Below are positions 1-22,085 of a stretch of DNA of 64,000 nucleotides, one piece after another. Location: positions 8,308,001-8,372,000 of the forward strand of contig CM097887.1 in the NCBI GenBank assembly GCA_044892525.1. Direction: 5' to 3'. The notes under the pieces are model-generated. The model worked only from the letters and a program-made list of their open reading frames with translations. It did not search any database and was not told the DNA's origin. Made by a program: the position numbers and the translations under genes. Numbering within the stretch: position 1 is the first letter of the stretch; the number at the start of each line of letters is the position of its first letter. The stretch is from Schmidtea polychroa. Lineage: Eukaryota.

Positions 1-49
1 AGCAATAGCGAAAGCGGATAACGGAGATAACAACAATCAAGAACCGAAA

Positions 50-6000: not shown

Positions 6001-9000
6001 TCAGATAGTCAGAGTAATACTAACACAAATGTTAGCTTGTTTCGATATATACAAGCGGGAAAAGAAAGTTAACTGGAAAATGATAGTAGGTTTCTTACCA
6101 TTTTTAGCTAAGACCATGGTATTACATGGCCACTCAAAAGACATTCATCGGATAAAGCGATTGATTAAAATATTAACAAAGATTAAAGGAACCGACGAAG
6201 AAGTAGGCAGACGATTCCGGAAAGCAATGTACGATGAAGCAACAAGACGACAATTGAAAAAGAATAAGCCAAAATTCTTGGACCGATTTAGAAGCCAATC
6301 ATCTAACAGCGATAGTGACGACGATGATAACGGGAACGATAAATGTCTTTATCCAAACAGAAACCCAAACGAAAAACCAATGGAAACGGCACCATATTGG
6401 GAAAAGGAAAAGACAAACACCTGGATCGCCAATGGAAGCTATATACCACCGGATATCGTGGGACCACAAGCAGCTTTGACCATGACACAAAATATGTATC
6501 CGCAATTACCGAGTCAACCCGGTATGCATTATATGCCAACACGACGTACCAAAAGTGTAGATCAAGCAGATGACGTAAGAACAATAGCAGCGATGAGTTT
6601 ACCTGGAGGTCCAGCAGTAACAGTTATGATTCAAATCAATGGTAAAGAAACCAATGCTATGATAGACACCGGAGCTAATGTATCAGCGATAGCGATTAAT
6701 CAAATTCCCAGTAAACACTGGAAAGATATCGAATCAACAACAATTCACATCATAGCATGTAGTAAAGAAACAGTGGACGTGGTCGGAAGATGGTGGACTA
6801 CATTGAGATACCAGGACAACGAAATTGAAACGTATTTGGCAGTAATACCAAAACTTAGCGTACCATGCATAATCGGAACGGATTTGATGCCAGAATTGTT
6901 AAAAGAAGTCGTAATTGACTTAACAACCATGTGTTTAAAAGACAAAACCGGTAGAATATGCAAAATGAATGCAGTCATCAGATGTCCAGAAAAAATAATA
7001 GTACCAGCAAAATCGCAGATGATTTGTCAGATAAAAGTGGATACGGGTATGGAAGGAGAAGTTATCTTTGAACCAAGCAAGTCATTTGAAAAGCGACGAG
7101 AATTACCACTCGCAAGAGAAATAATCACAATAAACCAAGAAGGAGTGATACCGCTCAACATCACGAATTTCGAAGAGGAAGACAAAATCATTTATGAGAA
7201 CGAAAAATTGGGAAGATTGACCCCAATGATGGACATAGAATTACCGAAAGTGACCAACGAGATGATCAAAGATGATGAATTATGGACAATAGATAGTATG
7301 TTGTTGACGAATGATGAAAAGAAAAAATTACACCGATTGTTGGTAGAATATAAAGATATATTCGCCATCTCAGATTTAGACTTGGGTACATGTGATGTTA
7401 CCTTACATGCAATACCACTCATAGACGAAACCCCAATTGCATTGAGACCATACAAGCTAGCAGAAATGCAGAAAGAAATAGCCGAAACAGAAGTACAAAA
7501 GATGCTAGACGCAAAAGTAATCGAACCAAGTTGCTCACCCTGGCAATTCCCAGTGGTCATGGTAAAAAAGAAAGATGGCACCCAACGATTCTGTATCGAT
7601 TATCGGAAGTTAAACGCAGTGACCAAGAGAGATACCTATCCATTGCCGGACATCAATGAGATGTTATTGATGTTGCAAGGGGCAGCATATTTTACTTCTT
7701 TAGATCTAAAAAGTGGATACTGGCAGATTAAAGTCAAAGATGAGGACAAAGAGAAAACAGCTTTCACGTTGGGACGAGATCTATATCAATTCAGGAAAAT
7801 GCCATTTGGACTGACCAACGCACCAGCATCATTTCAACGGTGTATGAACTTTGTCACCCATGGAATCAAACAATGTATGGTATATATTGATGATTTACTA
7901 ATCTATTCAGCGACATTTGAACAACATCTGGAAGATATCCGAAACGTATTTATTAGATTAAGACAGTGGAAACTCAAACTCAAACCATCAAAATGCGATT
8001 GGGCAAAGGAAAAAGTCACGTTTTTAGGACACATAGTGTCAGCTAAAGGAAAGGAGCCAGATCCAAGAAACATTGAGAAAATAAAAACATGTCCAGCACC
8101 GAAAACTGTCACCCAAGTTCAGGAATTTCTAGGATTATGCGGATACTATCGCAAATTTATCAAAAATTATGCAGGAATTGCAAAACCAATCCAGGAATTA
8201 GTAAAGAAGGATATTTCGTTCATTTGGGAAAAAGAACAACAACAGGCGTTCGAAACGCTGAGAGATAAACTAATCGAAGCACCTATCCTCGTACACCCAG
8301 ATTTTAAGAAGCCATTTCTATTGGCAACGGATGCAAGCGGGTACGCGGCAGGCGCGATTCTGGGACAATTAGACGATGAGGGAAAAGAGAGAGTAATCGG
8401 GTATTACAGTCGAACATTCAAAAAGCACGAAAAGAACTATTCGGTAACAGAACGAGAAGCATTGGCTATAATACAAGCTATCAAACACTTCCGATATTTA
8501 CTATGGGGACATGAGATATGCATAACCACAGATCATCAACCATTAGTGTGGTTAGGGCAACATAAAGAAGCGTCCAGTAGACTGATGCGATGGGCCATGC
8601 AATTGCAAGAATACTCCCCATTTATAAAATTCAAAGCGGGAAGAGCAAATGCCAACGCCGATTGTATGTCAAGATTTATTTTCCCAGATTTGGTGGATTC
8701 AGAAATGCAACGCATATGCTTAATAGTAGCGGAAGATTTGGATTTCTGTCAATTACGAAAGGACCAACAAGAGGACGCGGAATTAAAACAAATTATCGAT
8801 TATGTAAAAACCGGAAAGACAGAGGTATATGCGAAAGACCAAAAATTAAAAGAACATATGGATAAACACCGACACCGATATATTATAGAGAAAGATTGGT
8901 TGCTGATAATGGATGGGGAAAAACGATTAATGTGTATACCGGAAAACCGACGAAAAGAGTTACTAACGCAATATCACGATGGGAGATTGGGAGGACATAT

Positions 9001-10162
9001 GTCATCGAAAAAGACGTTAGCAAGAATGAAACAGAAATATTTTTGGCCTACGTTAACTGAAGATGTAACTGAATGGGTAAAAAATTGTCTAACTTGTGCA
9101 ACCAGGAAGAATACTGGATCGAAATGGAAAGCACCTTTAACGCCAATGCCAGTACCAATAGAACCAATGACAATGATATCCATGGACGTAGTTGGTCCAC
9201 TACCAGAGTCAGATAAAGGAAACGTTTACATTCTAGTGATCACAGACTTTCTTACGAAATTCCCAGAAGCATTCGCGATGCCAGACCAAAAAGCTAAAAC
9301 AATCGCAAAAATTTTGGTAGAAGAGATATGTTGCCGATATGGAACACCAAAACAAATCTTAACCGATCAGGGAACTAATTTTATGAGTGAGATAATGAGC
9401 GAAGTAACAAACTACTTCAAAATAGCAAAACTAAGAACATCTCCATACCACCCTCAAACCAATGGGATGACGGAAAGATTTAATGGAACACTTATACAAA
9501 TGTTATCAAACTACGTTGACCGTCACCAACGAGATTGGGACGAATATATAAACCTATGTCTTATGGCGTACAGAATGTCGATTCACGCATCAACGAAAAT
9601 GAGCCCATTCAAATTAATGTACGGAAGAGAATGTAATATGCCAATGGACCTAGAATACCAACCACCGATATCGCAGTATATGGAGATCGATGATTATGTT
9701 ACGAAATTCAAGGAAAGAATGCAAGAAATTTGGGAAACTGCGGGATTAAATATCAAGTTCTACCAGGAAAGTTATAAAGATTTACACGATCGAAAGAAAA
9801 ACGTGAAGCAACATACGTTCCAAACAGGTGATTGGGTAATGATAGAAACCCCGGAATTGATTCCAGGAACCACAAAAAAGTTACAACGCAACGGAAAAGG
9901 ACCATATGAGATCTTATTCGTAGGCGAAACTAATGTAAGAGTGAAATTGGTAAATAACCCCTTTACCAGACCAATATACGTAAACGTGGCACGATGCAAA
10001 TCAATTCCAAAAACAGCCACTAGTCAACCAGAAGGCCGTACATTAACCACACGTTCGCAAACCTACCGAATGAACATGATGCAACAACTCGCAGAACCGA
10101 TCACTGGACGATTAGGTATCCAACCATCAGAAGCGGAAAAGATTGTAAGAGGTAAAAATTAA
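50..10162 (+). CDS. Gag-(UBL x3)-(Bcl-2-like)-Env-Pol polyprotein, >3370 aa, 5'-truncated by the window (frame open back to position 2)
   Basis: CCHC knuckles 188-340; protease AMIDTGA (D at 6665); RT YIDD (7883-7894); RNase H TDAS/TDHQPL/NADCMSR (~8315-8670); integrase H-x6-H...CLTC, DVVGP, TDQG, NGMTERFN, GPY motif (~8975-9990). No stop codon in 10.1 kb. Confidence 0.97.
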   Translation: MNQFIPGAHQIFKPPQGRSNGNNGNRNNPNNENNFNNRRNMNDNKQCRTCGKPGHWDRDCYRNSNCNRCGRRGHTENVCQLRGCFNCGQPGHISRDCRERGQQQRPPQRNNNYIANPQRQSNPNEGKQMNVMQEISQMKQMMQQMMRPRQESAPQQTQNIRMMRSTENLNNYEVHQHVQEWQRLQAEEERIKQERNQQRQEQPLRINMMKLVKDMKSQYCYNYGKSPRVVPMTEPEKVKEITTEMKTENSTTISKGNQRIQKIFWKKIKDKIEKEHNKAKTETEDENNKSKEQTSQLNHQMLQESESEETTIFERKKLKRVPRMRNLQINMMKRTKDEASSDEEEDYVSSLGGEILQPNEISEPPKGEIKEEESGNEITSESEDEDIEIKLRKAREEAIKQVAEILPVVVRNQEFIDVIPFRRFVQKVMKLERNEKDLIPNEEKSIIKNYMEKMKQADTTRYVIKIGTSRGLERMWIKNTVTDELFDWIREHLGSSRKKEYLYQYQGEQIKPDMHLVDALIWPGETQILKLHKEKQPANLYDWAKDAKAEYDFNIKLKLEQIKQCTLRRNLDKLIKQIQEQVEDNWDLLITRRAPAMYELMSRLRDTEMLRMSDWRTINLIHKYGRLKETQPQRLEITIWLPNEEKRRIKMSNQSTVDDLVSKINQEITEKVRSESSDGMVDDVVMMYDKIILRAEDDTSLSEMGMWDNHQIIRIVPMDEFRTRDVTYQKEIRDRMKTLYQKSTEIIEIHQQWLKEKELQGKITKLNTRSCRRTPWERVWNAENKEWEIRKGIFVETDIGETESESEEEEEEPPEYEEEARGQTSDDESETDVTSESENEARHIHAMRKKEREYADMDGEEATEAREREEKERYKQLGDILAMGAKNQKRQVVALANIILKTSENIHNLRGMAKAIEEYRQYNEWYPEQLEQIIRKWRNQEWAQDTQERYHIRIKYPDKSIEELEVHPTTKIRELKKKLAYETPFHLQLFGKSLDDNADVGITPMRLEETNVLTMAETLGKPLKRKSKIIKPTKGSLSTPSPNKAPSKSNETEEVEEIILEDSDDEPGERSPLLVRWPTGAEMWTNNQPSTSYQQPTKLNIKEIIDNTTETETDEQFQKQREPTKVTPESQTDKIIDEWNEWLRNNDSSLPRTDNERNPNYENTREAGTMMEKRAKGRPKKQGEKSEFKTKEQLKQEQGQVRLEKLDKIVWDLKEAQPTIERGEKWIRELLKDMLIITNPQLRRLWQRKVASTEARQLWHTISGIIPKLIKEKTKTTKTDWDETKRVIEQLTTNANDDEHHLVVITYLMYNLMGLAARKIPNKQFANHVEMTVSIIENTIEPHIIRAGGWKRLIQAPRKNEQERSMQVRLKKLLNELEWELPMKDPASRKASINSLMMTMMIWMLCTSGATGFTIYDCDNMIMRDKYSLRDIEECRQASPNKLDIVRTKVTYHVYQESDFIRTQARECVVSKKVLAYYCGQYSYSTLILPGLDKEIVSIQREDCKELFRTGALKMHNGVTIHGQTGMIKTESVYVSGKVKSSDGSCNGGTYTIRGEVISGVVVIESYTVELKEYEAQFDANNYQMKTNPACKATENVCRTGVSTIIYEANTQKCRLQLLKSALFNEVKGEIYENENDEDGNDRVRMRNGKPMPPSPREKRLSTQKTPTALITDDPDLGMRFIKEKETTKCDSIVYKTNYAGIYMSRQIIDRAVGKIATEDVKLYLYANNKMDFLFHRGQTTLQKVYYDLIQNDCSLNKEILKTKLAIAITHPDNTMPSLPLPDGHFGRMVGEVMYTYQCTKTYARMPEKSILPEKRCANELEIRYKGQNRFVQPVTRIMNPVGFYPNLFNCSNAYGPLYERPDGKWMMLPGKTISEEPKKFGLIELATELDFKPIDVSNGGMYSPEDLETARLNVLFPARRESILSNMVTITGGTNYQSGPNYELLLSPDHFQQATSNMMKAMWGRFLVFGQMMAGILGIILIIQIVRVILTQMLACFDIYKREKKVNWKMIVGFLPFLAKTMVLHGHSKDIHRIKRLIKILTKIKGTDEEVGRRFRKAMYDEATRRQLKKNKPKFLDRFRSQSSNSDSDDDDNGNDKCLYPNRNPNEKPMETAPYWEKEKTNTWIANGSYIPPDIVGPQAALTMTQNMYPQLPSQPGMHYMPTRRTKSVDQADDVRTIAAMSLPGGPAVTVMIQINGKETNAMIDTGANVSAIAINQIPSKHWKDIESTTIHIIACSKETVDVVGRWWTTLRYQDNEIETYLAVIPKLSVPCIIGTDLMPELLKEVVIDLTTMCLKDKTGRICKMNAVIRCPEKIIVPAKSQMICQIKVDTGMEGEVIFEPSKSFEKRRELPLAREIITINQEGVIPLNITNFEEEDKIIYENEKLGRLTPMMDIELPKVTNEMIKDDELWTIDSMLLTNDEKKKLHRLLVEYKDIFAISDLDLGTCDVTLHAIPLIDETPIALRPYKLAEMQKEIAETEVQKMLDAKVIEPSCSPWQFPVVMVKKKDGTQRFCIDYRKLNAVTKRDTYPLPDINEMLLMLQGAAYFTSLDLKSGYWQIKVKDEDKEKTAFTLGRDLYQFRKMPFGLTNAPASFQRCMNFVTHGIKQCMVYIDDLLIYSATFEQHLEDIRNVFIRLRQWKLKLKPSKCDWAKEKVTFLGHIVSAKGKEPDPRNIEKIKTCPAPKTVTQVQEFLGLCGYYRKFIKNYAGIAKPIQELVKKDISFIWEKEQQQAFETLRDKLIEAPILVHPDFKKPFLLATDASGYAAGAILGQLDDEGKERVIGYYSRTFKKHEKNYSVTEREALAIIQAIKHFRYLLWGHEICITTDHQPLVWLGQHKEASSRLMRWAMQLQEYSPFIKFKAGRANANADCMSRFIFPDLVDSEMQRICLIVAEDLDFCQLRKDQQEDAELKQIIDYVKTGKTEVYAKDQKLKEHMDKHRHRYIIEKDWLLIMDGEKRLMCIPENRRKELLTQYHDGRLGGHMSSKKTLARMKQKYFWPTLTEDVTEWVKNCLTCATRKNTGSKWKAPLTPMPVPIEPMTMISMDVVGPLPESDKGNVYILVITDFLTKFPEAFAMPDQKAKTIAKILVEEICCRYGTPKQILTDQGTNFMSEIMSEVTNYFKIAKLRTSPYHPQTNGMTERFNGTLIQMLSNYVDRHQRDWDEYINLCLMAYRMSIHASTKMSPFKLMYGRECNMPMDLEYQPPISQYMEIDDYVTKFKERMQEIWETAGLNIKFYQESYKDLHDRKKNVKQHTFQTGDWVMIETPELIPGTTKKLQRNGKGPYEILFVGETNVRVKLVNNPFTRPIYVNVARCKSIPKTATSQPEGRTLTTRSQTYRMNMMQQLAEPITGRLGIQPSEAEKIVRGKN
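188..340 (+). other. Three tandem CX2CX4HX4C zinc knuckles (nucleocapsid)
   Basis: CRTCGKPGHWDRDC, CNRCGRRGHTENVC, CFNCGQPGHISRDC. Confidence 0.97.
1430..3091 (+). other. Three ubiquitin-like domains in the polyprotein (~1430-1645, ~1952-2200, ~2897-3091)
   Basis: The third aligns by eye to ubiquitin: LEVHPTTKIRELKKKL...FGKSLDD vs LEVEPSDTIENVKAKI...FAGKQLED. The second has I.LP..KRRIKM...STVDDLVSKI...DDTSLSEMGM. The first is SUMO/UBL-like (YQYQGEQIKPD) and weakest. Confidence 0.65.
3770..4108 (+). other. Bcl-2-like domain in the polyprotein
   Basis: BH2-like PHIIRAGGWKRL (GGW at 4091-4099), preceded at the expected spacing by a helix pattern matching the BH1/alpha5-6 region (TKRVIEQLTTN...HHLVVITYLMYNL...HVEMTVSII). 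The NWGR motif is not conserved. Confidence 0.65.
4226..6130 (+). other. Chuvirus/mononega-like class III fusion glycoprotein (Env) with internal signal peptide and C-terminal TM
   Basis: Hydrophobic signal (LMMTMMIWMLCTSGATG) then FTIYDC..YSLRDIEEC, DGSCNGGTY, CDSIVYKTNY, YANNKMDFL...YYDLIQNDC.L.KEIL, GEVMYTYQC, CANEL..F.QP.TRI, GMYSPEDL...FP.RRESIL; TM ~5948-6022. The motif series matches my recollection of chuviral glycoproteins. Confidence 0.85.
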
Positions 10163-10214: not shown

Positions 10215-13200
10215 TTGACGATGATCGAGAACTATGCAAATAGAGAAAGGACACACCCATTATTGCGAGTAGTCAAAAGCCAATGGCCAATATTATTTAC
10301 AATAACAGATCAATACGGAGACACACCATTACACAAACTCATGAAAGTAGGTAACAACGAGCAAATACTAGAAACAATAGAAGCATTTCACGACTGCAAG
10401 CGATCAACAGAACAAACAAACAACCAAGGTTACACACCATTAATGATAGCCGCAAACAGAGGCAAAACCAAAGACATTATAACCGCATTACTCGATACCG
10501 GATCGAAAATAACTACACAAGACCACGAGCGGAAAAACGCTCTACATCATGCCATCGAAGGGAGAAGTACCGAGGCGTTCACGTCATTGATGGAACTACT
10601 ATCATATGAGGACAATCGGGAAGTCGGAAACATGTATGATGGATTGTTAACAGCGATCAAAGAAAAACTGACGACAATTACCGGAATATTAATTACATGG
10701 AGAAGTCCAATTCAAAACGATTATATGATCAACGTAAACGAAGCGTTCACGAGAGGAGAGAACACGCTGATGAGAGAAGCTATGAAAGGACATCATTTAT
10801 TCGAAATCCCGAATCAATTACTAGAACGAGGGATAAAATTCACAAATCACAAAGACGAACAGTTAACAAAAAAGCGAATCGACACATTCGAAAAATCACT
10901 ATTCCAATTTACTAACCAAGTACGAAATAAATATTGGGAAACGGTAAGTGTGTTATATATGATGGACACAATGAATAACATCCGCGAGAATTACCTGGAT
11001 ATTATCCAAATACTTACAGCAGAGGAACGAATCAATAATCCAAACGGAAAGAAAACGAAAATAAGGTATGAGAAATCCAGGGAATCAAAGTCAACAACGA
11101 ACCAAACGGTCATAAACAACGTCATCGAAACCAAATCAATGAGTATAGATCAGGAGGCAATAATACGCAAAGCGAAAGAGGTATTCTTTGAGGAAATGCT
11201 AGAGTTGTCAGACGAAATAATATTGTCAAAAATAATAAAAGCTGTACATACATACGCAAGAGATCAAACCACGGGTTTAGATATCGGGAAAATCAAAACC
11301 TTCTTGCCTCGAGCATTTACGATGGTAACGAAGGATTCCAGAACACCCCTACAACAAGCAATACTAGCAGCGAAAGAAAATAGAGCAATAACGATCGTGA
11401 GAATCCTTGGAGATATGGGCGAGGAAACCAACACGAAAAATGAACAAGGCGAAACCGCCATGATGTATGCAGCTATAACAAAAATACACCCAAAAACACT
11501 CCACATCCTACATCAATCAGGATCGAAACTAGACGAAAGGTCCAATGAAGGAAATTCCACCTTGGACTGGGCAACCATACAGCCAAACCTAGAAATGATC
11601 AGATTTATTTGCAAAAATGCGACAAAAGAAGAAGTTGAAAATATGTGCAAAAACACATCTCAGTTTCAATGGAATACGGTACGGAAAAATCTAGAAGCAA
11701 TGAAATTATTATTAACCTGGAGAGTACCACAAAATAATAAATATGCGATAAATGTAAACGAATTCTACGAAAACGGAGAAAATGCGATGGTAAAGAATAC
11801 CCTAACGAAGGGGGGGACGCCTAAAATCATTTTAGTAGTATTAAATAGAGAAGACCTAAAATTCACGCAAAATCAGAACGAGCAACAACGAATTGGGAAA
11901 CATCGTCGTATGCAATTGAGAGAGTTAGTCAAAGAATGGAATAGAAAGAGGCATGCTGCAACGGGCAGGAAGGAGTTTGAATTCGAAGCAAAATTAGCAA
12001 GAAACAGAGTGCTAACAGCATATCGCAGATTATTGAACGATATAAATGTCGAGGACGACATTTTAAACGACAGCGGGGGAGATAAACACGATGACAATAA
12101 CGGAAAAGGCCGAAAGGAGGATAAAGAGAAAAGAGAACCGGAGGAGGGTAAACCGGAAAACAAGGATTCGGATACGAAAAGAGAGGGAAACAGCCCGGGA
12201 ACTAAGACCAAAGAGGAGGAAAAATCGAATAATGGAAAACAGAGGGTATGCCTACCTTTCACTAACAAAGAAATAGAGACAAATATGATATTAATGATAA
12301 TTATGCTTACCATGATAGAGTTAGTAACAGCTCATGGAGGGACGAGGACGATAAAAGAAACCAAAGAAGCGGAGAATCAAGATAGCAAAGAGGACGAACT
12401 AAAACAAGAAAAGAAAAAGCAAGCACAAGAGCAGCAGTGGGATTTAAAGGAAGAATGGGACTTAAAGGAAAGGTGCATACTAGGAAGATGCATGTCTAGA
12501 GCGTATCAGAAACTAGTACTGATAAATGAGGACACAGAACCAATAACAGAAGTAAGAATACAAGAAGCATACCGAAACCGAGACGGGAAAAGAATAACGA
12601 ACGTTAAAGGAAAAGAGGTACACCTAGGAAAAGGTGGCGAAGTAGTAATAACGCAGCTCCAACCAAGAAAAGAGCACAAAGTCTGTATTTCAAGATTAGG
12701 ACCGGGTGAGAGATGCCATCAATATGTGACGCAGCAGCAGCCTCCGAAGGAATATACGGTTTGTATCTGGAGAAACGAATCAAAAAGAGAATGCCGACGA
12801 TACCCGGGGAAAAGAGGAAAGAAAAGGAAAAACCACGACGAAAAGGACGAAGGAGGAAAGCACAAGAAAACTGGTGAGGAAGCTCAGGACAACTATGTTT
12901 CGGAGGAAGAGATGGAAAAAATACAAAAGATGGCAAAGGAGGGTATGAACGAGGAAATAGCAAGAATACGGGAAATGATGAAAGGAAATGGCAAAAGAGG
13001 AAACGAGAAAAGTACAGAAGCGATATCAACATTAACAAACAAGGAAAAACCAGAGAGTATAAGCGTGAAGCAGATGATGTGGATCAGTGGGATAATAATA
13101 ACAGGGGCATTCCTAATCATAACGGGGGGAACAATAAAAATAATTAAGGATAAACGACATCGCGGAGAACTAGAGATGACTCGAATCAGAAATTTCCAAC

Positions 13201-13286
13201 ATCGAGTGAAACGACCAAGTGATATCAAACAAGAACAGTGGGTGGAGGCCTGGAACGCTCAGCGCCCTCCAAACTCACGTATATAG
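10215..13286 (+). CDS. Ankyrin-repeat protein (two ~340-aa-spaced ANK modules) fused to an internal signal peptide, FN3-like ectodomain and TM; first ATG 10221, frame open from 10149
   Basis: ANK motifs GDTPLH, GYTPLMIAA, KNALHHAI, RTPLQQAI, GETAMMYAA, GNSTLDWA; duplicated TWRxP..Y.INVNE motif (10695, 11715); hydrophobic segments 12285-12332 and ~13074-13145. Confidence 0.85.
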   Translation: MTMIENYANRERTHPLLRVVKSQWPILFTITDQYGDTPLHKLMKVGNNEQILETIEAFHDCKRSTEQTNNQGYTPLMIAANRGKTKDIITALLDTGSKITTQDHERKNALHHAIEGRSTEAFTSLMELLSYEDNREVGNMYDGLLTAIKEKLTTITGILITWRSPIQNDYMINVNEAFTRGENTLMREAMKGHHLFEIPNQLLERGIKFTNHKDEQLTKKRIDTFEKSLFQFTNQVRNKYWETVSVLYMMDTMNNIRENYLDIIQILTAEERINNPNGKKTKIRYEKSRESKSTTNQTVINNVIETKSMSIDQEAIIRKAKEVFFEEMLELSDEIILSKIIKAVHTYARDQTTGLDIGKIKTFLPRAFTMVTKDSRTPLQQAILAAKENRAITIVRILGDMGEETNTKNEQGETAMMYAAITKIHPKTLHILHQSGSKLDERSNEGNSTLDWATIQPNLEMIRFICKNATKEEVENMCKNTSQFQWNTVRKNLEAMKLLLTWRVPQNNKYAINVNEFYENGENAMVKNTLTKGGTPKIILVVLNREDLKFTQNQNEQQRIGKHRRMQLRELVKEWNRKRHAATGRKEFEFEAKLARNRVLTAYRRLLNDINVEDDILNDSGGDKHDDNNGKGRKEDKEKREPEEGKPENKDSDTKREGNSPGTKTKEEEKSNNGKQRVCLPFTNKEIETNMILMIIMLTMIELVTAHGGTRTIKETKEAENQDSKEDELKQEKKKQAQEQQWDLKEEWDLKERCILGRCMSRAYQKLVLINEDTEPITEVRIQEAYRNRDGKRITNVKGKEVHLGKGGEVVITQLQPRKEHKVCISRLGPGERCHQYVTQQQPPKEYTVCIWRNESKRECRRYPGKRGKKRKNHDEKDEGGKHKKTGEEAQDNYVSEEEMEKIQKMAKEGMNEEIARIREMMKGNGKRGNEKSTEAISTLTNKEKPESISVKQMMWISGIIITGAFLIITGGTIKIIKDKRHRGELEMTRIRNFQHRVKRPSDIKQEQWVEAWNAQRPPNSRI

Positions 13287-13446
13287 AAAGGAATATGACT
13301 GTATATAATTGTAAAAAGTAAGTATATCTTATGTATATAACAGTACTATATCTTTATATAAGCGCGGTATCAATATTATACGATAACGGGAATCATAAAA
13401 TAAAATTAAATTTACATAAGAGTTGAAAAGTGTATATAAATTAGGA

Positions 13447-13806
13447 ATGGATCAAGGAAATAACGAAATGAACCACAATACAGTAACTGAAGAATTATGG
13501 AAGCAACAATGTGCCGTATTAGCACAATTAGTGTCCAATTTGCAAGAACAAGGACTGACGATGCACAGAAACCTGATCGAGAGTATGAACAGAGGATTTA
13601 GTTATTTGAAGATAATTGAAGACCAGAGGTTAAAAATCGAACAAATGCAAAGAGAGATAGAGAGGATAACCCAATATAGCCGTCGACAGGAAATTGAAAT
13701 AGACCGAATGAGGGAGGAAGCAGAACAGATAGAAATAGAAGACTGGTCGGAATGGCTAATGAATAGAGAGGAGAGCGGACACGAAGCCGACTCTTCCGAA
13801 CCCTAA
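13447..13806 (+). CDS. Small coiled-coil protein of unknown function (accessory ORF)
   Basis: Intact ORF with heptad-like segments; ATG at 13447 preceded by TTAG|GA; same composition as the element. Confidence 0.6.
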   Translation: MDQGNNEMNHNTVTEELWKQQCAVLAQLVSNLQEQGLTMHRNLIESMNRGFSYLKIIEDQRLKIEQMQREIERITQYSRRQEIEIDRMREEAEQIEIEDWSEWLMNREESGHEADSSEP

Positions 13807-13891
13807 ACCAAACCTAGCTTAAAATGTAAATAAGTGTAAATAAAATATCGAACCTGTATCGATAAGAACTACTTGTACATATAATTATAGA

Positions 13892-15280
13892 ATGGATAAA
13901 CGACAAAGAGAAGAGTTCAGAGAGATTGTCGAGCAAGTCCGAAAATCTACAACGATCAGAATACACAAACATGTTATGTGCGGAATATGTGAAAAGTTGT
14001 TAAAGGAACCTCACCAAACGCAATGTGGATGCCGAGCATGTAAAGAATGTATCAGTGAAGCAATAAAGAATAGACCACAGAGGTGCCCGGTGTGCAAAGA
14101 GACACTAATATCGAGTTTAGAAGACACTAACGAGGATAAAGCCGCAGTGAAAGACATGTTAAACACCAACCTGGGATGCAAAAATGCCCCATGCGAATGG
14201 AAAGGAGTAATATGGAAGGTAGTACAACATATGGGAGAATGTATGTACAGAATTGGCCAGTGTGAAAGGTGCCATAAAACCATTCGAGCAAGCGAAGGAA
14301 AAGAGCATCAAAGGCAGTGTGAAGAGAGATTAGAAAGATGTGAACACTGTGGAGAAATAGATACGTGGATAAATCTCACCCTCAAACATCACAATGTCCC
14401 AGAGGAGAGAGTATGTGCAGAGTTCAGTGGGGAATGCCCAAACGGATGTAACCAAGGGGAAATAATGAAGGTGGCACAGCATCTAAGAGAATGCGAAAAG
14501 AAAAGAATGACATGCGTACTAGGTAGATGGGGTTGTCAGAAATTACTACACCGAGGTGAGTTACCACATCATTTAGTAGAAAATGCTTCAACTCACGCAG
14601 AAATGTGGTCGACTGCGTTACGAGAAAGCGAAGAGAAAGTAAAACAAATGGAGATAGAGATAACATCGTTGAAAGTGTTAGTCAAAGAACTACTAGAAGA
14701 AAGGGAAGCGTTCGAAGAAGCCCGAGCAAACATAAAGATGCAAATAAACCGAATAGAAATCAGTAATAATCAGGCCAAGGAGCTACATCAGAAAATACGG
14801 GAAATAAATCTAAATGAGATAACCCCAACAGCACCCTACATATGGAAAATAACGGGAGTAAAAGAAAGAATACGAAAAGCAAAAACCGGAGAAGAGACAA
14901 GAATAACAAGTCCTGCATTCCATTCTTGGAAAAATGGGTACAAAATGAAAATGAAGATATATCCCAACGGGGACGGAACCGGATTAGATACGCACTTTTC
15001 GATTTTCTTTCTGTTATGTAAAGGAGAATACGACGAAATATTAGAATGGCCGTTCCAGGCAAAAATCGATATTACTCTGATGAACAACCAAAGTATACAT
15101 GAGCAAAGCTTCAAAACAACGGGGAATCAAATAGCTTACCAGAGGCCCCTCAACGAAGAAGGATCAGCAACAGGAGCACCTACGTTCATCTCACAACAAA
15201 GAGTAGAAGATATGGCGAGAAATGATACCATATATATCAAGATGACCGTGAGGAAAGAGGAGAAGGGTAGAACGGAGTAA
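13892..15280 (+). CDS. Intronless TRAF-like protein (RING, TRAF zinc fingers, coiled coil, MATH)
   Basis: RING CGICEKLLKEP.QT.CGCRAC..C...CPVC; zinc fingers C.N..C.WKG....VQH..EC; MATH YIWKI...SPAF..W.NGYKM.MKIYPNGDG.GL.THFS.FF.L.KGEYD.IL.WPF. Confidence 0.95.
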   Translation: MDKRQREEFREIVEQVRKSTTIRIHKHVMCGICEKLLKEPHQTQCGCRACKECISEAIKNRPQRCPVCKETLISSLEDTNEDKAAVKDMLNTNLGCKNAPCEWKGVIWKVVQHMGECMYRIGQCERCHKTIRASEGKEHQRQCEERLERCEHCGEIDTWINLTLKHHNVPEERVCAEFSGECPNGCNQGEIMKVAQHLRECEKKRMTCVLGRWGCQKLLHRGELPHHLVENASTHAEMWSTALRESEEKVKQMEIEITSLKVLVKELLEEREAFEEARANIKMQINRIEISNNQAKELHQKIREINLNEITPTAPYIWKITGVKERIRKAKTGEETRITSPAFHSWKNGYKMKMKIYPNGDGTGLDTHFSIFFLLCKGEYDEILEWPFQAKIDITLMNNQSIHEQSFKTTGNQIAYQRPLNEEGSATGAPTFISQQRVEDMARNDTIYIKMTVRKEEKGRTE

Positions 15281-15473
15281 CCAATCGAATAATGTTGTAT
15301 ATAATAATCTGTATATATCGGTGTATATAACCAATAAAATATTATATAATAATAGTATGAAAACCCTAAATACGAAAACCCAAAAATGATGCGAAAATTC
15401 CCCAAGAAACAGTAAATAATGAATAAATTCCTTTTTCATAATAAAAAGATTAATCGATGTCTATGATTTAGAG

Positions 15474-16529
15474 ATGACACAAGAGAAAATAACCGAAACT
15501 GCGATAGCCCCAACCAATGTCAACAAGACACAAATTCCCCGAGAACATAACAAAAAATGGAACAAAGTAATGTTCCAACTAACTAATCTCACCCGAAACC
15601 ACATCGAAGAAACTAGAGAAGATGAGAATAGTCAATACCAATGGTTAATACACAACTTAAGAGCGGAAGCAGAAGCATGCAAAAGAGCATCAAAATGGGC
15701 GTCACTAGAAAATACCCGCCAAGAAGCACACAGCCACTACTTAAAGCAGCTAGTGCAGGAAGCGAGAAAGAGACTTACCGATGAGAACACCAAGCGCGAA
15801 GCGGAAAAACAAATAGAAGACAGGAAAATGATGCACTTAGTGGCAGAAGCGAGAAAATGGAAAAGACAAAACAGAGAAATGAAAAAAGAGATGAAAGAAT
15901 TGCCCATGAGACTCGGATATGAGAGCGAACAGGGCAAATGGGAGGAGAATTTAATAATAAAGGAAGAATTGAAAAGGTTGAGAAAGGTCGCCGCCCGAAG
16001 CCAAACCTGGCAAACAAAGGCTATGGAGTTTGAGCGACATTTGGCAATGAAGTGCGACATAAGAGAGCACGAGAATGCCGCAATGGAAGAGATGATAACC
16101 CAACAAGCGGGACGGGTTGTGGAATTAGTAAATCAGGTAGAAGAGATGAAAAGAGACCTTAATGGATTACAAGGATCGCTGGAACAAAGAAACATGGTCC
16201 TAGCGGGAAAAAACAAAAAATTAGAAAACGAAAGGAAAATGTACACCGAAAATATTAAAAACTTAGAAATAGAAATTGAAAAATGGAAGGGCGACGAGAA
16301 AGTCAAGGCCCTAGACAAACAGATAGAGGCGAAAGATGAAGAGACAAGGTATCTCACCTATCTGCTCGACGAGGAATTGAATATCACTCGAGCTCTAAGA
16401 GACGAAATTAATGAATTGAGAGCTCAAATCCCCCAATATTACCTACCATACGACCCTATTGCGATACAGTTACATTCCGCGGTCGATAGTGATGAAGGTT
16501 ATGTAGGCCAGGAGGAAACCTTCGTATGA
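15474..16529 (+). CDS. Long coiled-coil protein of unknown function (accessory ORF)
   Basis: 351-aa intact ORF, E/K/R-rich heptads. Confidence 0.7.
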   Translation: MTQEKITETAIAPTNVNKTQIPREHNKKWNKVMFQLTNLTRNHIEETREDENSQYQWLIHNLRAEAEACKRASKWASLENTRQEAHSHYLKQLVQEARKRLTDENTKREAEKQIEDRKMMHLVAEARKWKRQNREMKKEMKELPMRLGYESEQGKWEENLIIKEELKRLRKVAARSQTWQTKAMEFERHLAMKCDIREHENAAMEEMITQQAGRVVELVNQVEEMKRDLNGLQGSLEQRNMVLAGKNKKLENERKMYTENIKNLEIEIEKWKGDEKVKALDKQIEAKDEETRYLTYLLDEELNITRALRDEINELRAQIPQYYLPYDPIAIQLHSAVDSDEGYVGQEETFV

Positions 16530-16699
16530 GGGTGGATGAAAAGATGAAAAACTAAAAACCGGGACGTATATCCCAAACAAAAAAAATTAAAGTACAGTAA
16601 AAGTATTTGAGGGACTGTAACCCTGTGTAAATAAAAACGATATAAATGTATAAGTATAAGTCGCACTGTAGCGCATGATTAATTGTAAATATTATAGAT

Positions 16700-17398
16700 A
16701 TGAAAATCGAGGAAATGATAGAAATTATGAGCGACGTAGAAGAGGGAGAGATTGAGGCAGAAACAACAGAAACACAAACGCTAAAGGCCGAGTTACGGGA
16801 AGAGAAATACGAAAACGGGAGATTAATAAACAAATACCTGGAGGACCGGAAAATGATAAAGGTGTTAAAGAAAGAGTGCGAAGCGTTGGGGGAAATAAAA
16901 AGAGAAACGGAAGAGGAAAATGAATGGCTACACGAACAAAGGAAGCGAGGGAAAAACTGGGAAAAGATAGCGGGAGAACTATGGAAAGAGAGGGCAAGCT
17001 TCAAAGCAAAGGAGGTAATCCAAGACTACTGGAAAACTGAGGCGAAGGAGCGCCAAACAGCTATAAATAAATTAAAACGACAACTAGAAGAAAACCAACG
17101 GGAAAGTAAAGAAATGAGGAAGTGGGTCCGCAAATATAGAGAAATAGAAAGAAAACATCAACAACAAAATTACCTGCAAGAAAACGAACAAGATCTCCTA
17201 CAAATCGAGCTAAAAAGAAACCTTGAAAAGAAAAGGGAAGAAATTAGACGCTTGGAAAAAGAAATTAGACATCTAAAGAGAGAAGCCCGTGAAAAAGACC
17301 GACAATTGGAAATGCTGCCCGAGTTAAGACACAGGGTAATTAAAGCAGAGTCCACCTTGATGAGAATCGGCGAAAATAATCCAAATCAGAACCATTAA
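16700..17398 (+). CDS. Coiled-coil protein of unknown function (accessory ORF)
   Basis: 232-aa intact ORF, E/K/R-rich heptads. Confidence 0.7.
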   Translation: MKIEEMIEIMSDVEEGEIEAETTETQTLKAELREEKYENGRLINKYLEDRKMIKVLKKECEALGEIKRETEEENEWLHEQRKRGKNWEKIAGELWKERASFKAKEVIQDYWKTEAKERQTAINKLKRQLEENQRESKEMRKWVRKYREIERKHQQQNYLQENEQDLLQIELKRNLEKKREEIRRLEKEIRHLKREAREKDRQLEMLPELRHRVIKAESTLMRIGENNPNQNH

Positions 17399-17438
17399 AT
17401 TAAGGGTCATTAAAACCAATTGTAAATAAACATAATGA

Positions 17439-18107
17439 ATGTATAATAGTATCATGCGAGGCGAGATGATGATAACAATGATGGTATTGATGATTCTGAT
17501 GGAAAGCAAACAAATAGACGCCCAACCGAAAATCGTACGAGATTACCGAAATCAAAATCAAGAACCTAAACAAGAATCCAGTCAATGCACATACCCGATG
17601 ACCGTAAAAACCCATATCATCCAAACCATTCAATCAACCCGATCACACATCAACAACATCCAAACAATGTGTAAAAAGAATCCCATTTGTAAAATGATAA
17701 ACAAACAAATCCTCGAACAAATCCAACAATTCGACCAGTTGGAACAACAAATGCAACAAGAGAATTTTGGAAATCTGGTAGAAAAGCCAAAAATACCTCC
17801 CGAAATCAATGACACCCATTATCTCATATATGTGGTGATCGCAGAAACCCTCCTCCTATGTCTACCAATATTCATGAAAATTTACGAAGTTCGAAATAGA
17901 TGTAGAGTCTCGACATCAATAAGAGTAACCTCGAACCAAAATCCTCAAGAAGTGCCCCTGACAAATCTTAACCCATCCCCATTCCGACCTCGAACCCCGA
18001 GTAATCAACCAATCCAGCCGAAATCTAATAGTCAGACCTATCTCAACATCAATACCCAAACCAACCAACAGCCGCCAGCAGAAGCATCAATGGTTAACAG
18101 TTCATAA
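17439..18107 (+). CDS. Putative small type I membrane protein (accessory ORF)
   Basis: Signal-like MMITMMVLMILMES..IDA, Gln-rich ectodomain with 3 Cys, TM YLIYVVIAETLLLCLPIFM, Pro/Asn-rich tail; AATAAA follows at ~18214. Confidence 0.65.
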   Translation: MYNSIMRGEMMITMMVLMILMESKQIDAQPKIVRDYRNQNQEPKQESSQCTYPMTVKTHIIQTIQSTRSHINNIQTMCKKNPICKMINKQILEQIQQFDQLEQQMQQENFGNLVEKPKIPPEINDTHYLIYVVIAETLLLCLPIFMKIYEVRNRCRVSTSIRVTSNQNPQEVPLTNLNPSPFRPRTPSNQPIQPKSNSQTYLNINTQTNQQPPAEASMVNSS

Positions 18108-18669
18108 ACTCTAACTCAAACATTTGTGTTATTATATGTGGAAACTTTTATTGTATGTACAAACTATCACCTTAAGTGATACTTGCTTGATCTTGCTTTG
18201 ACCTTGATCTTACAATAAAAATTTTATCATTGTTGTATAATTTTCGTGTTCGTGTTATATTTTTTTTTGAATGAATGAATTAAGTTAATTATGCAATTGC
18301 GGGACGCAATTTTGATGGGTCCCCGAGTGATTTGTTGGGCTGAGTCGAAAATTTAATCGTTGAAAAATAAGAAAGTAGGGAAGTAGAACATTAAGAAAAA
18401 TAAAAATAAAATAAATAAAATCAGAAATAAAATAGAATAAGGTATAAGGAAAATAATAATTAAGACATAAGAATTAAAACAAAAAATAAAATTAAGAAAA
18501 GATTAAAATAGAACAAGTTGACAAATAAATAAAGAGGAATTCAAGAAATAATAAGGAAATTAAGGAAATAAATAGAAAAACATATTAAAAATAAAGAAAA
18601 TAAGGAGAAAACAACCTAAAAACAAGAAAATTATATTAAATTAATAGAAATAAGCGGTACTCAACTCTG

Positions 18670-18703
18670 ATTGGTCCGCACAAATAAGAATTTGATATAT
18701 ATA
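18670..18703 (+). promoter_or_regulatory. LTR core promoter: inverted CCAAT box (ATTGG 18670) and TATA (TATATATA 18696-18703)
   Basis: Both motifs are conserved in the solo LTR (25166, 25192); a conserved AG|GTAAGA donor lies ~50 nt after the TATA. Confidence 0.55.
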
Positions 18704-19220
18704 CAACTACCAAAAACATTAAATTTACTGTTAACCCCGAGCATTTCATAGGTAAGAAAAAATGTTTACTGTTTCTACTGTTAACCCCGAGCATTTCATA
18801 GACATCTACAACTCACGGAGACTTATTTCAAGGATCAGCAATACAAGTAGAGCAACAGTTAATTCGAAAAACTTCACAGCAATTCGAACTCAGTCACAGC
18901 AATCGACATTCGACGAATTATCATCAGACTAATTTGGAACGACTAACGTTAATTTTCCGATTCAGCCTAATTCCATAGTAAGGGATTTTTATTTATGATA
19001 TTGTTTTTCGAAGTTAATAGTAAATATGTATATTTAATGAGTAATTAAACTTTTAAATTTAACCAGACTCTCTTTTCATTTGATCCTGAATAACGATTTT
19101 GATAAAGTAAATAATTTAAATGTTTAAAAGTATTTATTGGTAACAGGTGAACTCTTACATAATTTTTATGGATATTTATTTTGAAGTGATAGTTTTATGA
19201 TTTCTAATATTAACGAGAAA

Positions 19221-19350
19221 CGTGGCGTTGAGATACTCCATGTCATGGTGTGAGGTGCCTTCGGGAGCTCAGCCGGTGGACATGGAGTATTTCAATCACG
19301 CAGCTAGATTGGGCCGAAATGTGAAGGCTTCTTCACGGGTCCAATTGCTG
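19221..19350 (+). ncRNA. Conserved structured RNA element (two adjacent hairpins) in the LTR
   Basis: 17-bp stem 19228-19244/19279-19295 with 5 compensatory pair changes versus the copy at 25740-25807; cUUCGg apical loop; second hairpin 19301-19350. The strand is assumed from LTR orientation and G-U pairs. Confidence 0.75.
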
Positions 19351-21209
19351 AAGGACTTAAAATCTGTCAGAGTACCGAAATATAGACCGAAAGGAAACCT
19401 TATGAAATTTTCGAAAATAGGATATGTGCTTCACAGCGACTGAGGGAGTTCTCCTATTAACTCTGTATTGTCCAGAGTCGTCTTATAAGACATTCATGCC
19501 ACTTCTGTCTATAAATCCGAACTTACCATGTGGGGGAAGATACCATTAAACATCCATCGCTGGTTTTTCTAACATATCGAGAAGTTGAAATTGCATTCGG
19601 TAGATTTTTGAAAAAGTAAATCTAATTTAGGTCATCTCTTTCAGATGCGACATCCAAATCTTAGCATATGATGAGGAATTTACAATAAAGGAAAAGTAAA
19701 ACATAAAACCACAATAATACTGTATTCAATCACATATATTAACAAAATCTGGTAATACCCATTGAATAATTTTCATGCTGTCGCGTCGAAATATCCACTA
19801 CTGAAATATGCTTCATAGAGTCTAGTTGGCTGGTTCGTAGAGATCTTCCATCGTTCAAAAGCATCCAATATTGAGGAAATTACGAGTCGTAGTAAATAAA
19901 TCCAACATCATAAGCTCAGATGGGAATCGACACGCGATGTAACATTTGCAGTTCGCTCAGTACGGTTGATAGTTACAGATAAAATTTCCATCGAATAGGC
20001 ACCCATACATACAGACATACTGCTAACATAACTATGAGTAGCGTCATCCGGTCAGAAATATGCATGAGAAACAGCAGAATCATTCCGAATGCCTCTCACC
20101 GCAGGGAATGCCGCCATGTGTCACCCTCTCTAAGATTCTTAGTGTGTGAGTAGTAATCAGTGGTCCTATTAGATAATGCTGACATGAGATGTGACTTCCA
20201 GATGACTGACTCTTAAATTTCACTACTGATAAAGGTCATTCGTACCACTAAAAAGATAAGCCAAAATAACCAGTAACCGACTACTAAGATAAGAGACTCT
20301 CTAAAGTGCACTCATTAAAGATAATTTTGCTTAAATTAAATATTCTAAATAAAAATCGAAATTGTTGAAGGGGTATTTTAATTAATAACCGAAAATTCAA
20401 ACCAAACTTTATAACTAAACCATAGGAAGTTTCACCTAAGTGTTGTAGAGGTTTATCGTAATTCTGATTAGATGTTACAAATAATAGTAGTAGCCTTTGA
20501 GCCAAATTTAAATTAACTAAAGCATCCACAGGAATTTTTGGGTTATAAAATAGCTAGTAATATTGTACTTAAATTTCTCATATTCCATGTAAACTACGTA
20601 TCGCAATAGAAAACTAAATCCGATAACAAATTATTATGTAATTACAATGTTTTTTTACGATGCCATATTTCTACGACGATATCACCGTATGGTATGGATA
20701 AGGGGTGATCATAAAATAGTGACGTATAGTTTATACGAAATTACGAGTTGTTACTTATTCCGCTACTCGAGGTAAGGGTGCAAGTTTTTACTAGTCGCAT
20801 TTGGTCCAAAAACCTTATTTTGCATTAGAATAACAACAAATAATCAGCGAAATTTAAACGAAGTGTAGTATAGTGTATTTGTAATGAAATAGGTTTATTC
20901 ACTCCGGCATGAACAAATCCGTAAATTGCCTTTATGTGCGATAGATAGAAATCCAACTCGAACGCGATAGACGAAAATTAAAATTTTTACAAATAATTTG
21001 CATTCGTCAGGGAAGCAATCAGGGCGTTGAGGAATAATTTTTGTAAAGGATACGTAAAATATTAGTAATCAAGGGTGAAGGGAAGGATCCTGTTTCATCG
21101 ACTCGTCTTGTTTTCTTCCAGCACTAAGTATCCAATAGCGAATAAACCGTATATCTGATCCGAAATTTTTAGATATAGTCACCATAGTTTTCTTCTTTAG
21201 CCATCCATT

Positions 21210-21962: not shown

Positions 21963-22085
21963 AACCCCAGTGGCGGTCAGGATGAGGAACAAGGATCCGA
22001 TCTATGTTGATTATGATGTTTTCTCTTCTTTCGACAAACATTAGTAAAGTGTACAGCTGAATCCTGGTGTCATAACGTTGAAATT

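Follow-up and report, generated by a model that had tools for sequence, protein, structure and literature searches.

How does a complete gene for a TRAF adaptor come to stand between the pol region and the 3' LTR of a planarian retroelement, and what might it do there? A preliminary description of this locus, in a window of 64,000 nucleotides from Schmidtea polychroa (the whole stretch of DNA analyzed here), had read it as an intronless host TRAF that was captured by the element and now acts as a dominant-negative or rewired E3/adaptor. We conclude with high confidence that the TRAF is indeed element-borne, host-derived cargo. The fuller account, in which the gene is one of the 3' accessory genes of a giant Ty3/Gypsy endogenous retrovirus of Burro-like kind and has the history, expression and function set out below, is one that we favor with moderate confidence. 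The coordinates of all features are listed in Table 1.

Table 1. Features of the element and its neighborhood, in window coordinates.
Feature	Position	Strand	Evidence or remarks
gag-env-pol polyprotein, single ORF	1-10162	+	Pfam; open from base 2, cut by left window edge
Three CCHC zinc knuckles, nucleocapsid end of Gag	185-343	+	zf-CCHC, E 5e-15
Weak ubiquitin-like match within polyprotein (tentative)	2903-3007	+	PF00240, E 0.023, below cut-off
env, mononegavirus-type class III fusion glycoprotein, in frame between gag and pol	4232-6055	+	PF24664
pol, Ty3/Gypsy order	6623-9505	+	Pfam
Protease	6623-6898	+
Reverse transcriptase	7562-8038	+
RNase H	8225-8614	+
Integrase	8936-9505	+
Accessory ORF 1, 1023-aa ankyrin-repeat protein	10215-13286	+	Ank_2, E 5e-21; two repeat blocks
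Accessory spacer	13287-13422		same layout as spacer before TRAF
Accessory ORF 2, 127 aa, coiled-coil-like	13423-13806	+	no family match
Spacer before TRAF	13807-13891	+	two TGTAAATA motifs, one AATAAA, TATAG two bases before ATG
Accessory ORF 3, complete TRAF	13892-15280	+	ORF, Pfam, PDB, AlphaFold2, Foldseek
TRAF RING	13979-14095	+
Four TRAF zinc fingers	about 14168-14581	+
TRAF coiled coil, 75 residues	14585-14809	+
TRAF MATH/TRAF-C	14837-15256	+
Accessory spacer	15281-15473		same layout
Accessory ORF 4, 351 aa, charged coiled-coil protein	15474-16529	+	no family match
Accessory spacer	16530-16699		same layout
Accessory ORF 5, 232 aa, charged coiled-coil protein	16700-17398	+	no significant family match
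Accessory spacer	17399-17438		same layout
Accessory ORF 6, 222 aa	17439-18107	+	hydrophobic N-terminus, one internal hydrophobic span, Pro/Gln-rich tail
3' LTR, 4165 bp	18333-22497	+	termini TGTTGGG...CCCAACA; no target-site duplication of its own
250-aa ORF inside 3' LTR	21210-21962
Solo LTR of related subfamily	24825-28761	+	flanked by 4-bp duplication CCAA
249-aa ORF in solo LTR	27474-28223		homologous to 250-aa ORF of 3' LTR
Neighboring host gene, RhoGAP with C1-like zinc finger, GC-rich exons	30338-31783	+	homology to P0282

The TRAF reading frame and its predicted protein

The TRAF reading frame runs uninterrupted from ATG to stop over 462 codons; because the nearest in-frame stop upstream lies at 13841, translation can begin no earlier than at the ATG at 13892. 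Pfam assigns TRAF-mep_MATH (PF21355) at 96 bits, well above its cut-off of 27.4 (E 2.6e-27), together with MATH_2 (E 7.6e-27). The RING family zf-C3HC4 reaches 21.3 bits and so just passes its cut-off of 21; zf-TRAF gave no match at E < 0.01. In sequence searches of the PDB, the MATH domain and coiled coil resemble those of TRAF2, TRAF1, TRAF3 and TRAF5 (E about 1e-28, with a TRAF3 chain aligned from residue 243), while the RING and zinc fingers resemble TRAF6 (E 9e-15) and TRAF5 (E 4e-14). The fingers can be aligned to ZnF1-3 of TRAF6 with all conserved Cys/His columns filled.

The AlphaFold2 model (mean pLDDT 92.4) contains a RING, four beta-beta-alpha fingers, a single helix at residues 232-306 with pLDDT above 90, and a beta-sandwich at 316-455. 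The helix directly precedes the MATH domain and corresponds to the coiled coil, or TRAF-N. Foldseek returned target-normalized TM-scores of 0.75-0.85 against solved TRAF domains of TRAF2, TRAF3, TRAF1 and TRAF5. The protein thus carries the features of the TRAF family (MATH/TRAF-C, a preceding coiled coil, an eight-ligand RING and TRAF-type zinc fingers), and the complete RING-zinc finger-coiled coil-MATH architecture noticed in the preliminary description is confirmed in one ORF by Pfam, PDB, AlphaFold2 and Foldseek. Relative to TRAF2/TRAF3/TRAF5-type adaptors, domain order and fold are the same, and the best MATH similarity is to TRAF2/1/3/5. Residues 23-457 align to full-length TRAFs in one stretch, so the gene is intronless, as had been described.

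The giant element and its relatives

The TRAF gene belongs to a giant Ty3/Gypsy-type element that spans positions 1 to 22497. At least 22.5 kb is visible; the 5' part lies beyond the window edge, and the LTR pairing of the element is inferred because the 5' LTR lies there as well. The gag-env-pol ORF extends over at least 3370 codons without a stop or frameshift, and zf-CCHC, Monjiviricetes_fusion, RVP, RVT_1, RT_RNaseH, Integrase_H2C2 and rve all match in that one frame. The env match is strong (E 2e-67 overall) and covers profile positions 3-208 and 244-579 of 653. Neither Pfam nor the PDB returned anything significant for the 1300 residues that separate gag from env, for the gap between protease and reverse transcriptase, or for the small ORFs. 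Judged from its sequence, accessory ORF 6 may be a small membrane protein. Directly ahead of the 3' LTR there is no evident purine-rich tract, and Rfam and tRNA scans of the whole window gave no match.

Downstream of the element lies a solo LTR whose two ends match the 3' LTR at 81-85% identity and whose center cannot be aligned. We considered whether these two LTRs bound a separate small element and rejected this pairing: the second is flanked by a CCAA duplication of its own, the sequences outside the pair do not match, and the identity is only 81-85%. Further along is the host RhoGAP-like gene, for which the preliminary description gave five introns; homology to P0282 supports at least two, both short (about 128 and about 40 nt). 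A protein search with its exon returned one match, at 55% identity.

The closest published systems are the Burro/GYPSM1 elements, reportedly described by Jurka (2007) and by Grohme et al. (2018). These are giant Gypsy-like LTR retrotransposons of dugesiid planarians that carry MATH_TRAF_C, ankyrin, BIR and BCL2-like modules along with an in-frame env, the position of which between gag and pol was described as a first for Burro (PMC6431247). The element examined here likewise features three Gag CCHC knuckles, an in-frame env between gag and pol, the order protease, reverse transcriptase, RNase H and integrase, an apparently very large size with multi-kilobase LTRs, and TRAF/MATH and ankyrin cargo. 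It also has a Ubl-like stretch, weak in this case and to be read as tentative, that is placed like the Ubl/SUMO-like motif reported for Burro (PMC6431247). Burro-like elements exceed 30 kb with multi-kilobase LTRs; the visible length here, at least 22.5 kb, includes the 4165-bp 3' LTR. The visible part of this element yielded no BIR or BCL2-like module of the kind reported for Burro, and no dUTPase-like motif. The element is therefore apparently of Burro type, a likeness that concerns architecture and published descriptions rather than sequence identity to Burro1-4 or GYPSM1.

The position of the cargo is where these elements differ. Burro/GYPSM1 accessory modules occur within the polyprotein or as separate ORFs; MATH_TRAF_C is sometimes a separate accessory ORF, and in one species the TRAF is an ORF of its own (PMC6431247). 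Burro1 has a MATH_TRAF_C domain within its ORF1 and the Girardia (Dugesia) tigrina element has its TRAF as an upstream ORF, whereas here a complete stand-alone gene follows pol.

Seven metagenomic retroelements with a single-ORF gag-env-pol (loci L002-L008; proteins P0172-P0190) are relatives at 42-46% identity in pol and 32-40% in env. They share the in-frame env and have two to four downstream accessory ORFs, some with ankyrin; in L004 and L005, the ankyrin region follows pol or is fused to it. Their accessory genes nevertheless differ from those described here, including RNase_T-like and DNA_pol_B_2-like ORFs, and none of the seven carries a TRAF.

Origin, residence and expression of the cargo

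In the phylogeny, the element TRAF nests in a clade that holds Dendrocoelum lacteum TRAFs. It falls inside this planarian-type clade in 89% of bootstraps and is sister to P0004 in 195 of 200. The best named matches are from Dendrocoelum and Dugesia, and two traits are shared with the clade: Cys at RING ligand 4, and a Tyr that stands where Phe would follow the finger. Placement in the planarian clade, location inside an LTR-bounded element, and the strand, composition and spacer motifs shared with the other ORFs all uphold the original reading of a captured host gene.

Even so, the protein is remote from every known TRAF. The nearest among 1.84 billion representatives is 36% identical, a word-indexed protein search returned a single match (also at 36%), and no relative above 40% was present in any collection searched. 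Exact protein look-up found no record of the element TRAF or of P0004, and single-protein scans of viral contigs and metagenome contigs gave no match. A locus search with a five-sequence TRAF alignment recovered 80 TRAF loci; even their best segments did not exceed 40% identity, and in none of them was the TRAF inside an element. Two of the 80 adjoin unrelated Gypsy fragments on the opposite strand.

Codon usage ties the gene to its surroundings. It is purine- and A-rich, as in the element: third-position A stands at 0.451 in the TRAF, 0.449 in gag-env-pol and 0.450 in the ankyrin ORF, and relative synonymous codon usage correlates with pol at r = 0.80 and with the neighboring host RhoGAP exon at -0.28. 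The reported match between the A-rich codons and the element, and not the host exon, is thereby borne out. The long residence that had been proposed fits both this full adoption of element codon usage and the 36% identity to the nearest protein. Compared with cellular TRAFs and with planarian ones such as D. lacteum TRAF-2, TRAF-4 and TRAF-5, then, this one is retroelement-borne, intron-free, A-rich in its codons and at most 36% identical.

A retrocopy of a host TRAF could instead have landed in this one copy as a private passenger, meaningless to the element. One element copy was examined, and the relatives at 42-46% pol identity lack the gene, both of which would fit. However, the third-position composition cannot be distinguished from that of pol and the ankyrin ORF, there is neither a poly(A) tract nor a duplication around the TRAF ORF, and the motifs in its spacers recur in the spacers next to the other accessory ORFs. 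The gene is also fully intact despite its deep divergence from all known TRAFs, and Burro-type elements with TRAF modules have been published (PMC6431247). We regard a private passenger as extremely improbable.

Alternatively, the element copy may be fixed and silent, with the TRAF exapted by the host as one member of an expanded family. Planarians do have such an expansion of TRAF/MATH genes, with 99-121 transcripts, of which many show good expression (PMC6109357), and the reading frame here is intact. So, however, are all seven element ORFs in the window, the polyprotein of 3370 codons and the six accessory ORFs, and this is not the picture of a lone gene in a decayed element. Seven intact ORFs indicate a young copy whose integrity was kept by replication, and exaptation is accordingly very unlikely.

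For cargo carried by the element itself, the spacers hint at a mode of expression. After each accessory ORF comes a short spacer that contains AATAAA and UGUA(A/C/U)AUA motifs, the latter resembling the PUF-binding consensus. The motif TGTAAATA occurs five times in the spacers against 0.28 expected (five or more in 0 of 20000 resamples) and is absent from the 17.4 kb of element ORFs. In four of the six accessory ORFs, (T)TAG stands no more than four bases ahead of the ATG, which may be chance in A-rich sequence. The layout resembles a site of 3'-end formation with a cis- or trans-splice acceptor behind it, and each accessory ORF probably has its own mRNA.

As to history, we propose that the TRAF entered an ancestor of the element as a processed, intron-free host transcript and has since been kept through selection on the element. 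The ankyrin gene would have been acquired first and the TRAF later, because ankyrin also occurs in the more distant relatives.

Predicted function and bearing on planarian TRAFs

The RING of the element TRAF reads CGCRAC where the aligned TRAF6 and TRAF5 have CGHRFC. The PDB alignment confirms this difference as first noted, but it is not peculiar to the element: ligand 4 is Cys rather than His in 19 of 60 homologues, including nearly all planarian-clade members, and we reject CGCRAC as an element-specific change. All eight RING zinc ligand positions are occupied, and the protein keeps every column conserved in at least 90% of the 60 homologues, the zinc-finger Cys/His included.

Its unusual trait, judged from the alignment, lies instead in the MATH groove, which has lost its Ser-Ser-Ser finger. 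The finger is replaced by Q-I-A at positions where Ser is found in 45, 31 and 41 of the 60 homologues, which also separates the protein from cellular and planarian TRAFs. The K-x-Y and D of the groove are kept, while the canonical TRAF2-type groove (Arg/Tyr/Asp plus Ser finger) is absent; in TRAF2-peptide structures, these residues make the peptide contacts. Such a groove marks the TRAF2 subtype and not the TRAF family as a whole. Because the Ser finger is replaced, the partner specificity of the element TRAF has probably changed.

Classical dominant-negative TRAFs generally lack RING or zinc-finger parts. A simple dominant-negative, one half of the function first suggested, is accordingly weakened by the retention of the eight RING ligands, the zinc-finger Cys/His and all highly conserved columns, and the other half, rewiring, finds no support in the RING. 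A decoy could still damp immune or death signaling by forming mixed trimers with host TRAFs or by occupying receptors without signaling. The coiled coil is a trimerization module through which the protein could conceivably mix with related host TRAFs, and with the Ser finger gone, normal receptor contacts may be gone too. Yet a pure decoy has no need of the RING, zinc fingers and conserved columns that are kept, and 36% identity to the nearest TRAF makes co-assembly with host paralogues uncertain. We consider a decoy rather unlikely.

The TRAF might otherwise serve the life cycle of the element as an E3 or adaptor for its own proteins, for example in the ubiquitination or trafficking of Gag or Env. 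The intact RING and the weak ubiquitin-like match in the polyprotein are compatible with this role, as is the Burro polyprotein, which is reported with both a Ubl/SUMO-like motif and a TRAF inside it (PMC6431247). The seven relatives, however, have the same gag-env-pol layout and manage without a TRAF, which argues that it is not needed for the basic cycle, and no TRAF-binding motif is established in the element proteins. A role of this kind is distinctly unlikely.

We tentatively prefer a part in host signaling, although we hold this less firmly than cargo status. In cells that express the element, the TRAF protein would trimerize via its coiled coil, and the trimer, as an active adaptor or E3, would enter host TRAF-dependent death, stress and immune signaling alongside the ankyrin protein. 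Large DNA viruses provide a parallel, with host TRAFs likewise in virus-like genomes (megalocytivirus/iridovirus, e.g., ISKNV ORF111L, and klosneuvirus-type TRAF-like proteins); Foldseek matched the element TRAF to iridovirus and giant-virus TRAF proteins at E 1e-28 to 1e-15. The iridovirus TRAFs listed are 206-368 aa in length, 18-23% identical and encoded by DNA viruses, whereas the protein described here is longer and belongs to a reverse-transcribing element. One iridovirus TRAF acts on host death signaling: it binds TRADD and sets off apoptosis by way of caspase-8 (PMC3352826).

TRAF cargo in planarian Burro/GYPSM1 elements is already published, and the basic fact is not new. What this locus adds is detail: a full set of TRAF domains, an origin within the planarian clade, the probable acquisition of ankyrin ahead of TRAF, and the motifs in the spacers. 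Genome size is tight in retroviruses, which for that reason seldom retain large immune regulators of host origin. These giant elements break this size rule and resemble large DNA viruses, with TRAF and ankyrin here and IAP- and BCL2-like modules in published relatives. A complete TRAF with an intact RING and an altered peptide groove also amounts to a natural experiment in the rewiring of an immune adaptor.

The preliminary description also suggested that such elements could seed TRAF expansions in the host. Along this line, we raise a broader idea that is speculative and, at present, doubtful. Burro-type endogenous retroviruses may multiply complete, selectively maintained TRAFs, each with its own mRNA via an operon-like poly(A) signal, PUF-type motif and acceptor, and a sizeable share of the planarian TRAF expansion would then be retroviral cargo or its derivatives rather than the product of ordinary host duplication. 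Should many of the thousands of Burro copies carry cargo of this kind, that would bear on how the planarian TRAF/MATH expansion is read (PMC6109357) and on the annotation of TRAF genes in planarian genomes.

A TRAF gene in a Burro-like element

The first 22.5 kb of the window is set apart by composition, with a G+C content of ~39% vs 25-35% downstream in a composition scan, and by a strong AT skew on the + strand (0.26-0.45, A over T) that is absent downstream. Here seven ORFs follow one another on the + strand with gaps of 40-193 nt between them, and none (0/7) is interrupted in the visible part. In the gag-env-pol ORF, three CCHC knuckles share one frame with the env and pol domains; the env match covers the mononegavirus-type fusion glycoprotein family (PF24664) nearly in full (E 2e-67), and protease, reverse transcriptase, RNase H, and integrase are arranged in Ty3/Gypsy order in the same single frame. 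A weak ubiquitin-like match (E 0.023) between gag and env recalls, by its location, the Ubl/SUMO-like motif reported in Burro.

The internal ORFs are followed by an LTR unit of 4165 bp that starts with TGTTGGG and ends with CCCAACA. A further copy, 81-85% identical at both ends and unalignable in its center, has CCAA on either side; this 4-bp target duplication identifies it as a solo LTR. The first unit has no duplication of its own, which fits the 3' LTR of an element whose internal part lies leftward. The window does not reach the 5' LTR or the beginning of gag, and the visible element measures at least 22.5 kb.

Features of the window
Feature	Position	Strand	Description
gag-env-pol ORF	2-10162	+	open from base 2; at least 3370 codons
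Ubiquitin-like match	2903-3007		polyprotein
Six accessory ORFs		+	1023, 127, 462, 351, 232, 222 codons in order
Accessory spacer 1	13287-13422		after ankyrin ORF
Accessory spacer 2	13807-13891
Accessory ORF 3 (TRAF)	13892-15280	+	462 aa
Accessory spacer 3	15281-15473
Accessory spacer 4	16530-16699
Accessory spacer 5	17399-17438		after 232-aa ORF
Last internal ORF	17439-18107	+	222 aa
LTR unit	18333-22497
ORF in LTR unit	21210-21962	+	~250 aa
Solo LTR	24825-28761
ORF in solo LTR	27474-28223	+	~250 aa
RhoGAP/C1-like host gene	30338-31783
98-nt repeat, first copy	36283-36380
98-nt repeat, second copy	63903-64000		clipped by window's end

The preliminary description had reported a full-length intronless TRAF inside a retroelement; in accessory ORF 3, at the same coordinates, this TRAF is borne out by domain, structural, and alignment evidence. 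Pfam assigns a MATH domain (E 2.6e-27) and a RING barely over the cut-off; in a PDB sequence search, the coiled coil and MATH domain match TRAF2/1/3/5 (E ~1e-28), and the RING and zinc fingers match TRAF6 and TRAF5 (E 9e-15 and 4e-14). A predicted model built with 60 homologues (mean pLDDT 92.4) comprises a RING, four zinc-finger units, a 75-residue helix, and a beta-sandwich, and its TRAF domain compares with solved TRAF2/3/1/5 domains at target-normalized TM-scores of 0.75-0.85. Full-length TRAFs align with the protein end to end in one stretch, so the gene is intronless.

On present evidence, from the one copy examined, the TRAF belongs to the element. It is placed on the element's strand, downstream of pol and ahead of the 3' LTR. 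A at third positions (0.451) is as frequent as in pol (0.449) and in the ankyrin ORF (0.450), and codon usage follows that of pol (r = 0.80) but not that of the neighboring host exon (r = -0.28). The spacer features shared by the accessory ORFs, described below, count toward the same conclusion. The match between the TRAF's A-rich codon usage and the element, noted in the preliminary description, is confirmed, and the core interpretation of a captured host TRAF as long-resident cargo is supported.

Several other features of the window were recorded. The ORF open in both LTR copies encodes proteins 84% identical, and its low dN/dS (0.066; dS 1.24, dN 0.082) points to a gene within the LTR that codes for protein and is kept by purifying selection. 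No family matches it, its G+C content is 51%, and its codon usage differs from that of the A-rich internal ORFs; the protein features a coiled coil at the N-terminus, pairs of Cys, and a basic NLS-like run. Exons of the RhoGAP/C1-like gene are ~50% G+C and C-rich at third positions, against 27-30% G+C around them; its introns are very short (~128 and ~40 nt), and its best database relative is just 55-75% identical per exon. The exact direct repeat of 98 nt probably marks the border of a further repeated element, and long (TAA)n tracts adjoin 36.2, 39.5, and 42.7 kb.

Planarian affinity and the receptor groove

The closest of 1.84 billion library representatives is no more than 36-42% identical to the element TRAF. 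Planarians account for four of the six named entries among the best full-length matches (Dendrocoelum lacteum TRAF-2, -4, and -5; Dugesia japonica TRAF-2-like A). A phylogeny, the kind of check that the preliminary description had suggested, nests the element TRAF inside the planarian-type clade: in a neighbor-joining tree of 56 sequences, its nearest relative (P0004) is sister to it in 195/200 bootstraps, and in 89% of bootstraps the element TRAF falls inside a clade composed solely of planarian-type sequences. With that clade it shares two substitutions, Cys for His at RING ligand four and Tyr for Phe after the groove finger. The CGCRAC motif singled out earlier is therefore real but not peculiar to this protein; the Cys occurs in 19/60 homologues and is a lineage trait. 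Also topping the library search are tandem-MATH proteins reaching 3052 aa and 19 MATH stretches, similar to two unbroken ORFs (1606 and 1555 aa) of about ten tandem MATH/TRAF-C domains apiece on a 1.25-Mb contig (L001, ENA ERZ25072724; 10001-14821 and 19858-24525).

What distinguishes the element TRAF in sequence is a Q-I-A stretch in place of Ser-Ser-Ser (Ser in 45, 31, and 41 of 60 homologues). In TRAF2-peptide structures, these serines touch the core of the receptor motif, so their replacement has probably changed which partners are bound. All columns at least 90% conserved among homologues are kept despite strong divergence, which argues for maintained function.

Cargo acquisition and spacer signals

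The nearest env-bearing pol sequences among long proteins (42-46% identity) come from metagenome assemblies and likewise carry env in frame. Seven such loci (L002-L008) have two to four accessory ORFs downstream, some with ankyrin, and a TRAF in 0/7; this suggests that ankyrin cargo came first and that TRAF was gained later, in a lineage-specific way. None of the TRAF loci found on metagenome contigs was associated with such elements, and protein searches together with scans of viral and metagenome contigs yielded no further copy of the family. Other accessories include an RNase_T-like exonuclease (L003, L006, L007) and a DNA_pol_B_2-like ORF (L002). Within a few kb, the L003 and L004 elements have bacterial-type neighbors (ABC transporter, TetR, luciferase-like, Mnh), which could stem from chimeric assembly or from a host that has acquired many bacterial genes.

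Each of the five accessory spacers contains at least one AATAAA, and UGUA(A/C/U)AUA is strongly enriched, with eleven occurrences across them. The octamer TGTAAATA occurs five times vs 0.28 expected (five reached in 0/20000 resamples) and is absent from 17.4 kb of element ORFs. In four of six accessory ORFs, including the TRAF, (T)TAG lies 1-4 bases ahead of ATG. These features suggest signals for separate mRNAs through operon-like or subgenomic processing, in which 3'-end formation in the spacer would be followed by a splice or trans-splice acceptor before the next ORF. Several papers indicate that spliced-leader trans-splicing is in use among flatworms. The octamer also represents the PUF/Pumilio recognition consensus, and UGUA(A/C/U)AUA is of PUF/Pumilio type.

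Possible roles and relation to published Burro cargo

In their review of Burro/GYPSM1, giant Gypsy-like elements found in dugesiid planarians, Arkhipova and Yushenova give sizes above 30 kb and thousands of copies; the Schmidtea mediterranea Gag has three CCHC knuckles, and env in frame between gag and pol was, per the review, the first such case (PMC6431247). The cargo includes MATH_TRAF_C, BIR, ankyrin, BCL2-like, and Ubl-like modules, with the TRAF module on a separate accessory ORF in the Girardia (Dugesia) tigrina element, and interference with apoptosis and ubiquitination was already proposed (PMC6431247). Our find is a rediscovery of this cargo type in a Burro-like element. A large TRAF/MATH expansion is reported in S. 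mediterranea (PMC6109357); our literature search found no paper joining it with Burro TRAF cargo. Viral TRAF homologues of iridoviruses and giant viruses were among the structural matches, and one of these homologues binds TRADD and causes apoptosis through caspase-8 (PMC3352826).

We favor an active adaptor or E3 that would interfere with host death and immune signaling alongside the ankyrin protein. Alternatively, the TRAF may be a decoy, serve the element's own cycle, be a passenger private to this copy, or have been exapted as a host gene. The 222-aa ORF (hydrophobic N-terminus, one hydrophobic span, Pro/Gln/Asn-rich tail) looks like a small membrane protein and could be its partner or anchor. 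To the published cases the window adds a complete stand-alone TRAF, RING intact, downstream of pol, together with its planarian-clade origin, an altered groove, a suggested order of acquisition, and common spacer signals.
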